From: Schmidtea nova
Taxonomy: Eukaryota
Reading direction: 5' to 3'
DNA length: 64,000 nucleotides
Assembly: GCA_044892505.1 (NCBI GenBank)
Contig: CM097884.1
Coordinates: 128,960,001-129,024,000, forward strand
This document shows positions 24,360-50,738 of the stretch, piece after piece. Below the pieces are notes generated by a model. That model worked only from the letters and a program-made list of their open reading frames with translations. It was not told the DNA's origin and made no database searches. The translations under genes were made by a program, and so were the position numbers. How positions within the stretch are numbered: the stretch's first letter is position 1; every line of letters begins with the position of its first letter.

Positions 24360-26336
24360 AAAAAAATTGAGAAAATTGTTTGGTGTGTGTGCACCTAATG
24401 TTAAGAATACTGTGGTGAATGTTACTGATGTGCCATTGACGAGAAATGAGGAGGGTATTTTAAAGTTTGATCCGAATCATGTTATTAGAAATAGAATTGA
24501 TAAATTTAATCTTTTCCCAGATTTTGTTTTTTACTTAATCTAAAAATATGAATATTTATTTGAATTATTTAAAACACTTACTGAATGTTAATGTCAATGA
24601 TTATTTAACTAAGAAGAAAAAGCTAAATATTAATGAGGAAGAAAATTATTAATATATGTAAATTTGATAAAGGTAATGGTTTATCGTTCTTAATCATGAT
24701 GATTATATAAAGTTAGAAAAGGTAGTTATTTCCACAATTTGAAAAGATTGTCAGTTTTCGAAAGAATGACAAATTACCACCTTAAAAATATGAAACCATA
24801 TTAATATCTCTACTTCATGACTTAATTTTTAATAACAATGTATATATATAAGAATATTGTTAATTCACTTTAGCCTCGTGGATCCCAGCCTGCTAAATTA
24901 TATGATCTTTCAAAAGTACATAAAAATAATTTTTTAAGTAGTAAATTTAAAGATTGGAAATGGTGACTTTATGGTTTTGTTTGATGTGGTTAACATTTAT
25001 AGAAATGTTTCTTTAATAGAAACAAATGATATTTGTAGCAATTTATGGAGTGTTAACAGTTCACTTTATAATATTATTGATATTGCTGCTTTTCGTAAAC
25101 TTTTGACATTTGGTTTTCTAATGTCCATTTTATCTGTGATAATCAAAGGTATAAACAGATTGATGGTGTTGTCATGGGCTCACCTTCAGCTACTACAATG
25201 GCTACTATTTTCATATCAAGTTTTAAAAAGAAATTTGCAAATTGTAGTGTGAATTAACCTTTAGTATACAAACATTACGTTGATGATATTTTTCTTGTAT
25301 TTAAGAATAAAGAACACGTTGAAACTTTTTTTATTAATTTATATAAAAATATTAAATTTACTTTTGAAAAGAAAATTAATTCTAAAATATCATTTATTGA
25401 TTTGTTGATTGAAAAGAAAGATAAACATTTTGAAACCGAAATTTATAGGAAAACAACAAATACAAGAAAGCTTTTGTGATTTAAATATAAACGAAATATG
25501 ACATTGTCGTCAATTTATTGTAAATTTATAAATTGTATTGATTAATTACTTAATTTGCTACAGAAAAACGGATATCCAAAATGTTTCTTGAAACGAATGG
25601 TGAGAGAAACTGCTAATAAATGTATCAATAAGCTGAATGTGATTGATTACAAAATTTCACCTAATATTGAGCCTTTTAATTCCGTTCATAGTGTTCTTTT
25701 GATTGAAACAGGTAATGTTGTAATGGGATTGAATGATGGTGTTGATAGTAATACTAATGAAATAAAAATAATTTGAAAGATAGCATTGGTTCTGTAATAG
25801 TTTTACCGTTTTCTGAGGGTTTTGTAAATTTTAGAAAATTTATCATAAAACATATTGAAAATACTAATTTTAAAATAATTTCTAAGTCTTACAAAGTTCG
25901 GACATGTTCAATAATAAATTTGTGACGCCATTTGGTCTATATTCTGATCTCGTATATCGTTTTACTTGTAATAGGGGTAATGCCACATACATTGGAGAGG
26001 CTGTCCATCATCTGTTTCAAGAGCATGTTAGAAAGAGCAGAAAGAGTAATATTATTGAGCATAATAAGATATGCAAGAAAATAATTAATATTTTCAATTT
26101 CAAAATATTGTCTAGTGGTTTTAAAAATTAATATGAACGTGTGAAATGCGAGGATTTGATGATAAAATTATTTAATTCTAAAGTAAACATACAAAATGCA
26201 ATATCTACATCCATTTTGAGAGTTTTTAATTTATTTTAATAGGGTTAATAAAAGTTTTATTGGATTATGCACATGTGATTATATATTCAATAATAAACGC
26301 ATAAATTAGATCAATTTCTTTATTGAATTTGTTTAA
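24360..26336 (+). mobile_element. Long decayed Penelope-like element (family A): RT plus GIY-YIG endonuclease
   Basis: PAKLYDLSKVHK, VLFDVVNIY, DGVVMGSP, YKHYVDDIF (25267-25293), NGYPKCF, VYRFTC...TYIGE; 3' UTR stops at a TTAA just before the position of the hammerhead. Confidence 0.9.
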
Positions 26337-26429: not shown

Positions 26430-29400
26430 TTTTTTACACGAGTGAACGTTTGTGACGGTACCATCCGTCCAAACACTTGTACATCTTGCATTCGGCGGCT
26501 TACAGAATACCTTTTCTCCTCTATCATAACGACTTAGAATTTCGTCATTCTTGATTTCCACTTCTTGCATATCCTTCCAGTCGTATGTAAATTGTTGTCA
26601 CGAAGGCGCTTCAAAGTCGCCACTGGAGCTCATGTTGATCTAGTATGTCAAGGGTGTCCCCTTTCGTACGGGCCGCCATTCTCTTCATAGTCCTGTGGTT
26701 CCTCTCAACAATTCCGTTTCCCGATGGTCGGTAAGCGCATCAAAAAATACGACCAACACCCACTTTGCACATAATTCCTCTAATTGACGAGATCTAAATG
26801 AATCACCATTATCCATGAGCAACTGGCACGCAGGTCCGCGTTCTCTGAATATATGTTCATAGATTCTAGTAAAGGTCACAGCATCCTCGTTACAAATCTC
26901 TCTCCATATTGCGAATCTACTCGGTCCGCAGTCGATACACGTCAAATAACGCTTATTCTGGTAGTGAGTCACGTCTAACGCCAATCTGGTTTAATTACAC
27001 TTCACCGCAAAATTTCCATGTTTCCATCTTACAAGTGTTGGATCTATCGTTCGACACTTAATACAGTTTGATATCACACCTTGTACCGCTCCATGAGATA
27101 CGTTAGGAAGCAACTTCCTTACGAAATACAGAGTTCGATCCACTCTGAAGTTATGCGCCTCGTGGCAATTCTTTATTCTGTCGGATATCTATATAGTAGA
27201 ACAACTTACTTGTTTAACCCATGTACGCCAAGCTTTTTTAACTCTAGTTAAAACGTCGGCCTTGTTTTTCTCGGTCGGGACAAACTCCACTGTTATCTTT
27301 AAGTTGTATGCCAGTTGGAGTTCGCGAACAATTTGTAGACGCCTAAGAATTAGCATCTCAGAAGATCCGTGAGTTTTTACTCGATGACTATCTGTCAGCA
27401 ATGACCCCAGCCAACTTTGGACCGTCGCAGAATCTGATTTCACGATTATCAACGATAGATCCCACTTAATCTCGAGATTAATTCCTTTAATTACAGCATT
27501 GAGTTCAGCCACGTTTATATGCGCTGCGTCGTCTGTCTTTTTCAGCCAAGCGGCATCCTCCACGATCTCTCCGTTGATTTCGAGACAAACTCCAAGATTG
27601 CTTGCATCACACCATACAACTCCATCTTTTGTCGGTGAAACATGTCAAACTCCACAAACTAAATCATCTTTCTTAACGAGTTCGATAATTTCAGCTATTA
27701 TCATGGAAGCATAATCTCCAATTGTATCTTCCCACGTTGAACTGGTACTCTGGCGCTTAACATAACTACATGCAATCTGCAACCATCCAGCAACTGGGTA
27801 GTGACCGACCAGATGACCGCACAAGAAAAACAGCTCCCTCCTTGTCATCGCTTCGCATGGTCTCATCTCCCTTAATTACGTTTCTTCTCCTCCAATATCT
27901 GCCTTCCGTGCATCTAGAGATCTGTAATCCCAAAACTTTAGAAGTATCGAATTTTTCCGGAGTTTTAACTGCTAGCCCGTATCTTGCCAGATGACGCACA
28001 ACTTTGTCTAATTGTACTTTTGACTTATTGACAATGATATCGTCAATATAACTGTCGGTTGCCTCTTTAATGTCTTTACGTAATCTTAACACTCTTCGCA
28101 CTATGGCAGACATTATTTTTAGTGCTACATTGAGGCCGAAACCCAATCTTGTCAAAGCATATACCTTTCCTAAAAACCTGACTTTTTGAAAATCCCACAG
28201 ATCGGGATTTACATGTATTTGTAGATAGACTTTTCTCAGATCTAGCATCTCTACTTTCTCCCCGAATCTTCAACAACGCCGTAAAGATTCGTCGCAAGCT
28301 TCACTCTGACCCGTGTGGCTCATTACATATTTATTCAGTTCGCGATAGTTGAGTATTGGTCGTATTTTTCCTTTGTTAGACTGATTAACTGCCATTAATG
28401 GTAGTATACCATCAGAGTTTCCTTCATAAGGCGTTAACCAACCGTTTCTAATCCATTCTGTGATTTCCGCGTCGAATCCATTGCTTAACTCTGGCTTAAT
28501 TCCATAGTTGGCACATATATTACCAAGTTCAGGAGGTTGATTTTTCCATTTCCAGCTCACTGTTCAATTGCCGGAAAGGAAATCGGCTTGAAAGTCTTCA
28601 TCTCTAATTTCCAGAGAATCGGTATGTCGTTCGCCTGCCCTCAAGAAATCGGACTTTCTCCCCACGGTGCTGGCCAAAAGAAGCGATACTCCTTGCCTTG
28701 ATATATTCACCCGCCGAGCATTCCTATAACATCCATTCCCAAAATTGCACCAAAATCTCTTGGAAGGTTTTCCATCACCAGACAGACCACTCGCAGACTT
28801 GTCTTTCTAATAACGATGTTAACCTCGACGGTTCCCAAACTCTTGGCCAATGATCTATCAGCCACCAGCACACTCTCGCTCTTCCCATACGGTCCGCTGT
28901 CCAACGAGGACAAAATAATAGATTGGGTACAACCTGAATCTACTAAAGCTTTGGAAGTCCTTCCGTTGACAGTTACAACGACAGTCTGCAGCGCCATTAT
29001 TGCTTTTCCGGAGTAAACACTGCGCACGTGTTACTCCAATAGTGTTTCCAGTCTGTTTCTTTGGGCACGATCGCGAGATGTGGGCTTTATCACCACATAT
29101 CCAACATTGTTTGTTTTTTCGGAAACATGTATCTTCATTGTGCCCTTTCTTTCCACAAAACGAATACATTTGGTCATTAGGATTGGGAATTCTTTTTTCT
29201 TTTACTCCCAGCATACAACTTTGCTGAGAAACTACAATACTCAACATAGTTCGAGCTATCTATACGACCGCATCCATTGCCATTGTTTCAATGGTCGGAA
29301 TAGCCTGTAGTGACAGTGATATAGAAGCGGGAAGTCCAGTAACGAACGAACATCTAATAATGGCATCATTGACTCCAGATAACTTACCCAGAAATGTTAG

Positions 29401-30769: not shown

Positions 30770-31117
30770 TAGAGATAAAAACGTTTCCTAGAATTTTTCT
30801 TCATTCATTTGTCATGAAAATTACGTTGATCTGAGGTACCTATTGATTCTGATGAAAGTACTTTGTTAATTTCGGAAAGTGACAAAAATCGATCTAATCG
30901 CACTGAGCCGAAATATGTGTTGGTATTCCCTTATTTTGAGGGCTTCAGAGAATTTAAGCACAAAATTCTCAAACATGTAGGCAGGGATCAATTTAGGATT
31001 TTCCACGTCTTGCAAAGTTAGCAGTATGTTCACTAATAAATGTCCAACGCCATTTGGTTTGTGTTCTGAGCTCGTGTATCAATTTTCATGTAATGGGTGT
31101 AATGCCACATACATTGA
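30770..31117 (+). mobile_element. PLE fragment related to family A (RT thumb to start of GIY-YIG)
   Basis: FPRIFLHSFV...GIPYFEGF...TPFGLCSELVYQFSCNGCNATYI, nearly identical to the motif in the 42222-43046 ORF. Confidence 0.75.
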
Positions 31118-31207
31118 AGATATGAAATATTTCTTATCTTCAGCGCGGGACACAATGACATAAAATTCGAGATTGAATACCCGAAAGAAGACGGATCCCT
31201 CGAACTA

Positions 31208-32002
31208 TTGGATCTGAGCATAAAAATCAACTCAGACACACCAGCATATGGGTTCTACAGAAAATCAGCCCGCAAAGAAATATTTATGCACCAAAGATCA
31301 GAACTTCCTCATCTGCAGAAGGTAAACGTCATTAGAAATGAGAGACAAAGGATAGCTAATCGATGCACAAAGAAAGAGGACAATTCAGTACAGCAAAGAA
31401 TATTTACAGAAGTCCTGCATCGTAATGGATACCATAATATTAACGAAATCAACAAAATAAAATTCAACCAGAAAAGGCAGAAAGACCTACAAAAGGAAAA
31501 GAAATATTTCTACCTCCGAATTCCTTTCATCAGTGACCGAATAAATTTCATGATCATCAAAGAACTTAATCTCACTGGCCTTCCGATTCGTTTGGCACAT
31601 AGATCTAAGACATTAAGGAGAGCTCTAGCTAACAACACGAGAAAGGAAAATACATGTAAAATGGAAAATTGCCAAACACCAAAGAAATTATGCTTTCGCA
31701 AGAACATAATCTATAGCATCATGTGTAATAAATGCAAAGAAATTTACATCGGAAGCACCCTTCGGACTTTGCATCAGAGAATTAAAGAACATCTTGATCC
31801 TGGTGGAAAGTCATCTGTATATAGACATCTCCACCAATGTCATACAGAAAATAAGGAAAAATTAATATCAGTGAGAATATTGACAAATGAAAACGACGAG
31901 AAAAATCTCAGACTTAAAGAAGCTATTCTCATTAGAGACAAACACCGAAAAATTAACTCTAAAGAGGAAGTAAGCGAAATCGCCCACTTGTTATCTTGTT
32001 AA
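31208..32002 (+). CDS. PLE ORF fragment: RT thumb, Cys-rich linker, GIY-YIG endonuclease
   Basis: LLDLSI...FYRK...HLQKVNVIRNE...NGY...LRIPFI...CKMENC...C...NIIYSIMCNKCKEIYIGSTLRTLHQRIKEH...RLKEAILI...INSKEE; 5'-truncated, no real start codon. Confidence 0.88.
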   Translation: MDLSIKINSDTPAYGFYRKSARKEIFMHQRSELPHLQKVNVIRNERQRIANRCTKKEDNSVQQRIFTEVLHRNGYHNINEINKIKFNQKRQKDLQKEKKYFYLRIPFISDRINFMIIKELNLTGLPIRLAHRSKTLRRALANNTRKENTCKMENCQTPKKLCFRKNIIYSIMCNKCKEIYIGSTLRTLHQRIKEHLDPGGKSSVYRHLHQCHTENKEKLISVRILTNENDEKNLRLKEAILIRDKHRKINSKEEVSEIAHLLSC

Positions 32003-32436
32003 AAAATGTGGTTCTACGAAGACGAAAGTATAAAAGTAAAAGGAAGATATAAAAAAAGAAGAAAGAAAAGTGATAGTACAGAGAATTTATGGACATTTCA
32101 AAGAGATATAATTAAATTTTAAAATTCAAAAAATAAAATTCAAATATAAAAGGTTGGAAAATTAAAAGTGTAGAATAGAGACAATGGAAAAATTTAAAAA
32201 TTTTTAATTTTTAAAAAAAGGATAAATTTATTTATTCTGAAAAAAATTTAGAAAAAATTTTTAATAATTTTTAGAGTATTTGTTTTATATTTTTAAATTT
32301 TTAACAAAAAACATTTAAAAACAATTAAGAATTTAAAAAATTTATATTAATCAGATTAACATCCAATGAAAAGGAAGAGAAATCACGAAAAAAGAAACAA
32401 CAGAATGAATGAAGATACCAGTTATTTGCCGAATTA

Positions 32437-32475
32437 GAGATTGACGAGGATTATTTGATAATCGAAAATTTTCTC
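32437..32475 (+). ncRNA. Minimal type I hammerhead, U3-G8 variant (family B)
   Basis: GAGA UUGACGA G GAUUAU UUG AUAAUC GAAA AU UU^ UCUC: 4-bp stem I, 6-bp stem II, palindromic stem III AAUU. Confidence 0.75.
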
Positions 32476-32649
32476 ACTTAATAAAATTATTTTTGCAGTN
32501 NNNNNNNNNNNNNNNNNNNNNNNNNNNNNNNNNNNNNNNNNNNNNNNNNNNNNNNNNNNNNNNNNNNNNNNNNNNNNNNNNNNNNNNNNNNNNNNNNNNN
32601 NNNNNNNNNNNNNNNNNNNNNNNNNNNNNNNNNNNNNNNNNNNNNNNNN

Positions 32650-32853
32650 ACTATAGATCAAAATTTTTTTTTTATAAACAATAACACAATATTTCGGCAC
32701 AGCCTTTATCAAGTGTGTATATACACACTTGATAAAGGCTGTGCCGAAATATTGTGTTATTGTTTATAAAAAAAAATTTTGATCTATAGTCATTATGAGA
32801 ATTATTGATAATAATAATAAAAAAAGATCAAAGGTGAAAAAAGATAATTATGA

Positions 32854-32886
<33 letters not shown>

Positions 32887-33088
32887 CATAATTATCTTTT
32901 TTCACCTTTGATCTTTTTTATTATTATTATCAATAATTCTCATAATGACTATAGATCAAAATTTTTTTTTATAAACAATAACACAATATTTCGGCACAGC
33001 CTTTATCAAGTGAAATACACACTTGATAAAGGCTGTGCCGAAATATTGTGTTATTGTTTATAAAAAAAAATTTTGATCTATAGTCATT
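32650..33088. repeat. Alternating inverted array of the family D hammerhead module (-,+,-,+), flanked by gaps
   Basis: Head-to-head centres at 32720/32721 and ~33012; tail-to-tail join via ~(ATT)10 at ~32855-32885. Confidence 0.95.
32725..32757 (+). ncRNA. Minimal type I hammerhead, U3-A8 variant (family D); further copies at 33019-33051 (+), 32684-32716 (-), 32981-33012 (-)
   Basis: ACAC UUGAUAA A GGC UGU GCC GAAA UA UU^ GUGU: 4-bp stem I, 3-bp GC stem II, palindromic stem III AUAU. Confidence 0.75.
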
Positions 33089-49331: not shown

Positions 49332-49688
49332 AATAAGCATTTGCTGCAAAAACAATTTTATTAAGGGAGAAAATTTTCGATATAAAATAGTCTTCGTCAA
49401 TCTTTAATTCGGCAAATAACTGGTATCTTCATTTTGCTGTTTCTTTCTCGTGAATTATCTTCCTTTTCATTGGATGTTAATCTGATTATTATAAATTTAA
49501 AATTGTTTTCTGAATTTTTTTTATTAAAAATTTTAAATATAAAATTCAAACTCTAAAATTTTAAAAATTTCTAAAATTTTTTTTTTCGAATAAATAATTT
49601 TATCCTTTTTTAAAATTTAAAATTTTTTTTCAGTTTATTGTCTGTATTTTACATTTAAATTTTCCAAACCTTTATATTTGAATTTTTT
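49332..49688 (-). mobile_element. PLE family B 3' UTR with U3-G8 hammerhead (49367-49404)
   Basis: Reverse complement aligns by eye with ~32130-32499; HHR AAGA UUGACGA A GACUAUUUUAUAUC GAAA AU UU UCUC. Confidence 0.85.
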
Positions 49689-50621: not shown

Positions 50622-50738
50622 GAAATACACACTTGATAAAGGCTGTGCCGAAATATTGTGTTATTGTTTATAAAAAATTTTTTGATCTATAGTCATCATT
50701 ATGAGAATTATTGATAATAATAATAAAAAAAGATCAAA
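50622..50738 (+). repeat. Single (non-palindromic) family D module
   Basis: GAAATACACACTTGATAAAGGCTGTGCCGAAATATTGTG...ATGAGAATTATTGAT; runs into a gap. Confidence 0.92.

Follow-up and report, generated by a model that had tools for sequence, protein, structure and literature searches.

The window analysed here, the whole stretch of 64,000 nt, is AT-rich (G+C about 27%, with 13 N gaps) and carries a series of short motifs with the core of a hammerhead ribozyme, in which the letters at core positions 3 and 8 differ from one family of copies to another. Positions 3 and 8 form a tertiary pair in the active hammerhead fold. The question raised by this locus is whether the C3-G8, U3-G8 and U3-A8 forms seen side by side are states of the families themselves or the decay of individual copies, and to what kind of element the motifs belong.

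Motifs in the window were detected by direct reading of nt 32200–33000 and by a relaxed core expression run on both strands, after which all spans were re-extracted. A strict structural descriptor (core, stem II of at least 3 bp, GAA, palindromic helix III, non-G17 and stem I of at least 3 bp) found 12 motifs in the window, against a mean of 0.01 expected from 200 first-order Markov simulations of 60 kb. The preliminary description had reported CUGANGA cores in families A and C, U3 with G8 in three copies of family B, and UUGAUAA in family D, all with one extra nucleotide after A9 and a palindromic stem III; the re-extracted spans agree with it throughout, in position as well as in form. The features of families B, C and A are as follows.

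32437–32475 (+): family B hammerhead, UUGACGA (U3, G8); core expression and descriptor; the same motif flanks intact 856-codon PLEs
49366–49404 (−): family B copy, UUGACGA, with damaged stem II; core expression
41954–41992 (−): family B copy, UUCACGA (G5C), 5'-truncated just upstream of the hammerhead and adjoining a (TAA)n microsatellite
31208–32002 (+): C-terminal part (linker and GIY-YIG) of a B-type PLE protein, 5'-truncated; Pfam GIY-YIG, E = 6.9e-07
32500–32649: assembly gap (N), unfilled, which the B tail enters; it lies between the end of the B motif (32475) and the start of the D palindrome (32650)
12623–12661 (−) and 12823–12861 (+): family C head-to-head pair, canonical CUGACGA; core expression and descriptor
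42076–42118 (−): family A hammerhead, canonical CUGAUGA, downstream of an A-type PLE endonuclease ORF
40451–40493 (+): family A copy, CUGAAGA, with decayed stem II; core expression
42222–43046 (−): ORF fragment of an A-type PLE, containing the endonuclease; 49% identity with the protein of the C-type PLE

The B motif at nt 32437–32475 (+) reads GAGA-UUGACGA-g-GAUUAU-uug-AUAAUC-GAAA-AUU-U/UCUC, where the slash marks the predicted cleavage, after the U at nt 32471. Stem I is formed by GAGA/UCUC, stem II by GAUUAU/AUAAUC and helix III by AAUU. The motif starts 435 nt downstream of the end of the GIY-YIG ORF (nt 31208–32002), whose copies genome-wide are 94–96% identical, some of them lying within 856-codon frames. 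No hammerhead motif touches or spans the N gap at nt 32500–32649.

A-type PLE endonuclease fragments were also observed at nt 25904–26131 (+) and nt 31026–31163 (+). Since the second of these is directly upstream of the truncated B-type ORF, the B copy inserted into or beside an A-type copy that was already there. Another retroelement accounts for a weak minus-strand match to RVT_1 (nt 27766–28248). A 284-aa ORF at nt 39399–40253 (+) encodes an ISXO2/IS1595-like DDE transposase domain (Pfam, E = 6.3e-11) and is what is left of a DNA transposon, with PLE fragments on either side. Near one end of the window are two mutually inverted arrays of a 22-nt tandem repeat (nt 1159–1334 and 2485–2868), 87–94% complementary and about 1.2–1.3 kb apart.

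Family D has the motif ACAC-UUGAUAA-a-GGC-ugu-GCC-GAAA-UAU-U/GUGU, and its ten copies in the window are mostly arranged as head-to-head pairs.

32684–32716 (−): D hammerhead (U3-A8), left arm of a head-to-head pair; core expression and descriptor
32725–32757 (+): D hammerhead (U3-A8), right arm of the pair; predicted cleavage after the U at 32753
32981–33013 (−), with truncated stem I, and 33019–33051 (+): D head-to-head pair; core expression and descriptor
44064–44096 (+): D hammerhead; core expression and descriptor
46139–46171 (−), with a G-U in stem II and stem I lost, and 46172–46204 (+): D head-to-head pair; core expression and descriptor
48964–48996 (−) and 49006–49038 (+): D head-to-head pair; core expression and descriptor
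50629–50661 (+): D hammerhead; core expression and descriptor
near 11211–11247 (−): decayed D copy; core expression

Most D copies are only about 150 nt in length, in the window (nt 32650–33088) as well as at loci L001–L020 and at L021:2241–2392. These short copies have a sharp 5' end about 8–11 nt before the hammerhead core, at (GA)AAUACACAC, and discrete 3' ends, either 102 or 67 nt beyond the cleavage site, that border on (TAA)n, (ATT)n or (TA)n. Often a pair of them is joined head-to-head into a near-perfect palindrome, reverse transcription or joining stopping exactly at the 5' edge of helix I. They are mostly solo or head-to-head, and not in the direct tandem arrays that, with circular RNA intermediates, characterise non-LTR retrozymes (short non-autonomous hammerhead repeats). 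Comparison with complete elements shows that the short copies are the junction part of an autonomous D element, the apparent tail being its 5'UTR and first codons; in the window, the sequence downstream of the motif at nt 32725–32757 is this same 5'UTR and the first codons of a D-type PLE.

The elements themselves were followed in the rest of the genome, in part through three fetched loci (L021, G000:C1:77006500–77015500; L023, 338227500–338236500; L089, 10810000–10818000), and full-length, uninterrupted ORFs were found for families B, C and D. The D unit is 2,767 nt long in the tandem array of L021, where two units are 100% identical and carry an intact 869-codon RT-endonuclease frame (RVT_1, E = 1.3e-07), the C-terminus of which can be aligned to the GIY-YIG region in B; from the stop codon to the hammerhead is a distance of about 115 nt. 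Upstream, solo D copies elsewhere have a sequence in common, which proves to be the last part of a long ORF that includes an RT YxDD motif and has a C-terminus resembling GIY-YIG. Four sequencing runs containing the D junction, all from one study and of unknown kind, consist of contigs with Nextera adaptor ends and are DNA-like, with no preferred ends; their steps in depth mirror genomic copy number, being high over L021:2241–2392, lower upstream and about 30-fold lower downstream. The B unit is 3,136 nt long with an 856-codon frame at 6 loci, and the C unit is about 2,880 nt long with frames of 850–859 codons. A hidden-Markov search with three endonuclease sequences, for which the best candidates were scored, gave D-type copies only. 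In all three families the predicted cleavage site falls shortly upstream of the ATG of the next unit, by 6 nt in C, 41 nt in D and 74 nt in B.

The motifs belong, then, to deeply diverged PLE lineages, in which they occupy the same unit-junction position in full-length tandem copies, in the 3'UTR of one unit. The B, C and D proteins are only about 25% identical to one another in pairwise comparison, while the A fragment is 49% identical to C. Other hallmarks of PLEs are present as well, namely tandem units, head-to-head inverted 5'-truncated copies, and copies that run out into (TAA)n, (ATT)n or (TA)n. Inverted copies truncated at the 5' end, and microsatellites as targets, are typical of PLEs (PMC8557442). 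D is a very young PLE, and both B and D are intact, recently amplified autonomous PLEs.

The architecture of the motifs is shared in spite of this divergence. U4, G5 and A6, A9, G12, A13 and A14, the A15.1-U16.1 pair and a non-G17 are present in A, B, C and D, including the motifs beside intact ORFs, and the sole copy that breaks the invariant core letters is the one at nt 41954–41992 (G5C). A single unpaired base follows A9 in all copies (U, G, A, A and A in families A, B, C, D and E, respectively), and helix III is self-complementary throughout, being AUAUAU in A, C and E, AAUU in B and AUAU in D. The sequences of stems I and II vary among the five families and the pairing is kept. This extends to subfamilies of B, as the younger B1 has stem I GAGA/UCUC and the older B2 has GGA/UCC, a difference of one matched extra A-U pair. 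Minimum free energy folds (ViennaRNA) of the B, C and D motifs consist of exactly helices I and II with the core open; the family A copy in the window has only 2 bp paired in stem I, and its fold differs from this pattern. Dimer cofolding gave trivial domain-swapped duplexes only.

Family E was observed adjoining the C-type element in L089 (L089:6631–6663, minus strand). Its motif, GCAC-CUGAUGA-a-GAGAAU-uaa-GUUCUC-GAAA-UAUAU-U followed by GUGC, combines a canonical core with a stem I of 4 perfect base pairs.

Searches with Rfam gave no hammerhead match, either at the gathering threshold or at E values up to 10, for the whole window or for pieces of 100–141 nt containing C, B or D. As the canonical family C is missed too, the models evidently do not cover min-HHRs, and the result is silent on B and D specifically. 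It had been predicted in the preliminary description that standard CUGANGA searches would overlook B and D. That is so, and with Rfam the oversight extends to C.

The reading that best accounts for these observations, to which we would give a probability of roughly 0.7 as a whole, is that the motifs are the minimal type-I hammerheads of PLEs (min-HHRs), from at least five co-resident families (A, B, C, D and E), and that the letters at positions 3 and 8 are the states of their master copies. Families A, C and E have C-G. U-A is found in D and also in B3, an old subfamily of B, while B1 and B2, the active B subfamilies, have U-G, a wobble for which the literature consulted documents no active state.

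This last part can be examined directly from copy numbers. For D, 62,791 matches to stem II plus GAAAUAU were found, and 41,601 exact anchored matches genome-wide; UUGAUAA is present in 94 of the first 100 anchored matches listed. C3 occurs in only 283 D copies in the genome (of the first 100 listed, 98 are CUGAUAA and 2 CUGAUGA), and only 94 copies are UUGAUGA, with G8. Family B has about 7,560 matches genome-wide (control, about 50); among the first 100 listed all have U3, none has C3, and 64 are UUGACGA, which is also the core of all 11 hammerheads flanking intact 856-codon elements. Family C has about 4,700 copies; of the first 100 listed, 97 have C3 and one has U3. At position 3, then, sporadic change affects no more than about 1% of the copies of B, C or D. 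The variant letters belong to the masters, and the 3/8 variants are states of master copies and not decay of individual copies.

C3 is found in 72 B copies genome-wide (about 1%), and 13 of these are in one local array. In the latter (G000:C2:328858123–328881984) the 13 B-type CUGACGA hammerheads lie within 24 kb at irregular spacing, which looks like local amplification of a revertant and not like a transposing subfamily. A canonical C3-G8 subfamily of B was considered and rejected, as the 72 copies consist of dispersed singles and this one 24-kb array.

Two alternative explanations can be weighed against these data. According to one, U3 and A8 are sporadic C-to-T and G-to-A changes in dead canonical CUGANGA copies within an AT-rich genome. 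The G+C content of the genome, about 27%, is in its favour, as is the fact that C7-G8 of B is a CpG and that UUGACAA and UUGAUGA copies of young B1 are sporadic decay. Against this, U3 is found in 100 of the 100 first-listed B copies and in every one of the 11 motifs beside intact ORFs, UUGAUAA makes up about 94% of the first-listed D copies (more than 41,000 in total) and is found in tandem units that are 100% identical and have intact ORFs, and sporadic change at position 3 is limited to about 1% of B, C and D copies or fewer. The genome-wide counts refute the decay explanation. The preliminary description had asked whether U3-A8 and U3-G8 are fixed in their families, and the counts show that they are; the C3-G8 consensus with sporadic decay that it named as refuting its view was not what the counts gave. 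The other explanation is that the D palindromes are miRNA-like hairpin genes or foldback DNA elements, with an incidental likeness to hammerheads. They do give Rfam matches to mir-3688 (55.6 bits, gathering threshold 84) and mir-31 (45 bits, threshold 51), but these are below threshold and symmetric on both strands, as for any long perfect hairpin, and were rejected as generic. Moreover, each arm is the end of the 3'UTR plus the 5' start of an autonomous PLE, and the copies are met with singly, in tandem and inverted, inversion of 5'-truncated copies being a known outcome of PLE insertion (PMC8557442). We consider the hairpin explanation very improbable. It may be noted for annotators that the D palindromes at nt 32672–32769, 32969–33063, 48952–49050, 46127–46216 and 44026–44108 could be mislabelled as miRNA genes by automated pipelines.

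Within the B lineage, both U3-G8 and U3-A8 occur. Copies with UUGACAA, and some with UUGAUGA, carry the flank signature of young B1 and show no clustering on the flank tree (for UUGACAA, 9 changes compared with 9.5 in shuffles); these are sporadic decay. The UUGAUAA copies of B type behave differently. None of 20 carries the B1 signature, and they cluster on the tree of flanking sequences, with 6 changes compared with 15.6 in shuffled data, and no shuffle out of 500 gave so few. Because of this clustering and their own flank signature, an origin from UUGACGA by double CpG decay was rejected. Copies were then sampled by flanking sequence only, so that the core letters had no influence on the choice. 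In the B subfamily with UCAC as the 3' strand of stem I, exactly UUGAUAA is present in 52 of 100 copies, A8 in about 85 and G8 in 10, while the UCC subfamily has mostly G8, with U, A or C at N7. The oldest-looking copies in the lineage are U-A, and those currently active are U-G. The B lineage has thus kept U3 throughout, and G8 and A8 have been switched in replicating masters; the tree is unrooted.

The presence of U3-G8 and U3-A8 subfamilies in a single lineage means that exchange through the wobble did happen. The suggestion in the preliminary description that U3-G8 is a wobble intermediate holds to this extent, within B. It does not hold for the path to D, as a direct descent of D from B was rejected on two counts: the RT-EN proteins are only 25% identical and the stem II sequences are unrelated.

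If the motif is functional, self-cleavage would be expected to release the RNA of the element. As the predicted cleavage site lies upstream of the ATG of the next unit, cleavage of read-through or tandem transcripts would free unit-length RNA, and the literature suggests that it would take place as dimers, through the palindromic helix III. Constraint on the motif is suggested by D, where the hammerhead is identical at 37 of 37 positions between two subfamilies (e.g. L012 and the main one) whose flanks are 82–85% identical; in more diverged D copies, 21 of the 22 positions left free by the search pattern are kept, while flanks have 65–70%. The 37/37 identity fits such a constraint. We infer that the motifs probably cleave in vivo, and that the 3-8 pair is likely to be under selection for pairing, with U-A as a true compensatory state and U-G as a tolerated wobble.

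The principal alternative is that the variant cores are weak or dead ribozymes. The motif of 33–39 nt would then be kept in masters for recognition by the RT, for folding of the junction RNA, or by hitch-hiking in young families, and U3-G8 and U3-A8 would be a tolerated loss or attenuation. Several observations are in line with this. When all single and double mutants of a type III hammerhead were scanned, activity came back with the G3-C8 swap only, and all other 3/8 variants were low (PMC9901934), so that U-G, and even U-A, may be weak. The min-HHRs of PLEs have low activity in vitro, cleaving poorly even as dimers (PMC4209133), and PLE clades without hammerheads proliferate well (PMC8557442). 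The most prolific families in this genome, D and then B, are those with non-canonical pairs. Every B and D insertion retains sequence on both sides of the predicted cleavage site, indicating that the RNA template had either escaped cleavage there or been religated. The C3-G8 revertants of B, about 1% of copies, did not spread and founded no dispersed subfamily, so that the canonical pair had no visible advantage.

Other observations speak against a weak or dead motif. The two changes in D hit exactly the pairing positions and leave G5, G12, A13, A14, A15.1-U16.1 and the G-C stem II untouched; the stems covary between families and subfamilies; and the D motif is invariant between diverged subfamilies. 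C3-A8 is found in no family, although with about five families this absence is not statistically significant. U3-A8 variants were also reported to be active in vitro (Przybilski and Hammann 2007, as summarised in PMC3088659). On balance weak or dead cores seem the less probable explanation, yet one to be taken seriously, and functional min-HHRs are preferred. The preliminary description had taken it as established that compensatory swaps at these positions rescue activity. This is right for G3-C8, but rescue depends on context, and in the scan that swap alone succeeded (PMC9901934). A more speculative possibility, which we think doubtful, is that weakening of C-G to U-G or U-A may itself be selected in PLEs to lower self-cleavage, with U-G as a stable adaptive state. 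The RNA that is reverse-transcribed in B and D must span a hammerhead left intact or religated, since insertions keep both sides of the site. Selection for weaker cleavage would also fit the two families with non-canonical pairs, B and D, being the most prolific here; U-G would then be more than a passing intermediate, and PLE lineages would then be expected to move freely between U-G and U-A, as within B.

The role of hammerheads in PLEs is unsettled: most clades have them almost without exception, their cleavage in vitro is poor, and very successful clades lack them. The present genome offers a natural comparison, with five co-resident families of one architecture, core pairs of C-G, U-G and U-A, and one lineage that switches between U-G and U-A; it supplies constructs with which to test wobble tolerance in a dimeric min-HHR, and the strength of cleavage against success in transposition. 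That CUGANGA descriptors and Rfam models undercount such motifs is already known.

The U3-A8 form is not new. Natural covariation to U3-A8 was reported by Perreault et al. 2011 (PMC3088659), and in the min-HHRs of PLEs it was described from the Cercyon elements of Schistosoma mansoni, with about 1,300 matches, by Cervera and De la Pena 2014 (PMC4209133). The latter authors also described the unpaired base at stem II, the palindromic helix III, dimers, tandems of about 3 kb and opposite-strand pairs. No description of a hammerhead family fixed for U3-G8 was found in the literature searched, the coverage of which was partial (Lunse et al. 2017 lies outside it), and a U3-G8 wobble fixed in an intact, high-copy PLE family seems to be undescribed. 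What is new here is modest: the fixed U3-G8, and a lineage in which G8 and A8 have been switched.

Among the closest known systems are the min-HHRs of PMC4209133, which lie in the pLTRs of PLEs. As in these, the motifs described here are type-I, with a short helix I, one unpaired base 5' of helix II and a short palindromic helix III that implies dimers; they occur as repeats flanking an RT-endonuclease ORF in units of about 3 kb, the copies are mostly solo or in opposite-strand pairs, and the U3-A8 form needs its own descriptor. They differ in coming from another genome and having unrelated stems, in the number of U3-A8 copies (more than 41,000 compared with about 1,300), in the D helix II of only 3 bp, and in including a family with U3-G8 fixed, a state absent from that paper's account. 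The hammerheads of Perreault et al. 2011 (PMC3088659), from bacteria and other sources, show the same two core positions changing together with the Watson-Crick pair preserved; unlike the motifs here, most of them are complete hammerheads that have tertiary contacts and a genuine helix III, and they do not come from PLEs. Engineered exchanges at positions 3 and 8 (Przybilski and Hammann 2007, to the extent related in PMC3088659; PMC9901934) concern the same tertiary pair and likewise show that pairing matters, but the outcome varies with context, as in the 2023 scan, where only G3-C8 gave rescue and U variants were low (PMC9901934), and none was made in a dimeric min-HHR. A hammerhead variant from a saltern (Perreault et al. 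2011, as quoted in PMC7151607) also has U3 and G8. According to that quotation it differs from B in having a two-base insertion beside position 3, in its prokaryotic or phage source, in being a single case, and in its very low activity except at high salt. Finally, the HDV-like ribozymes of the non-LTR retrotransposons R2 and L1Tc (PMC6765202) likewise self-cleave just upstream of the coding region and can free the RNA of the element from a co-transcript. These belong to another class of ribozyme and of retrotransposon, and in the PLEs described here the motif also ends the upstream tandem unit.
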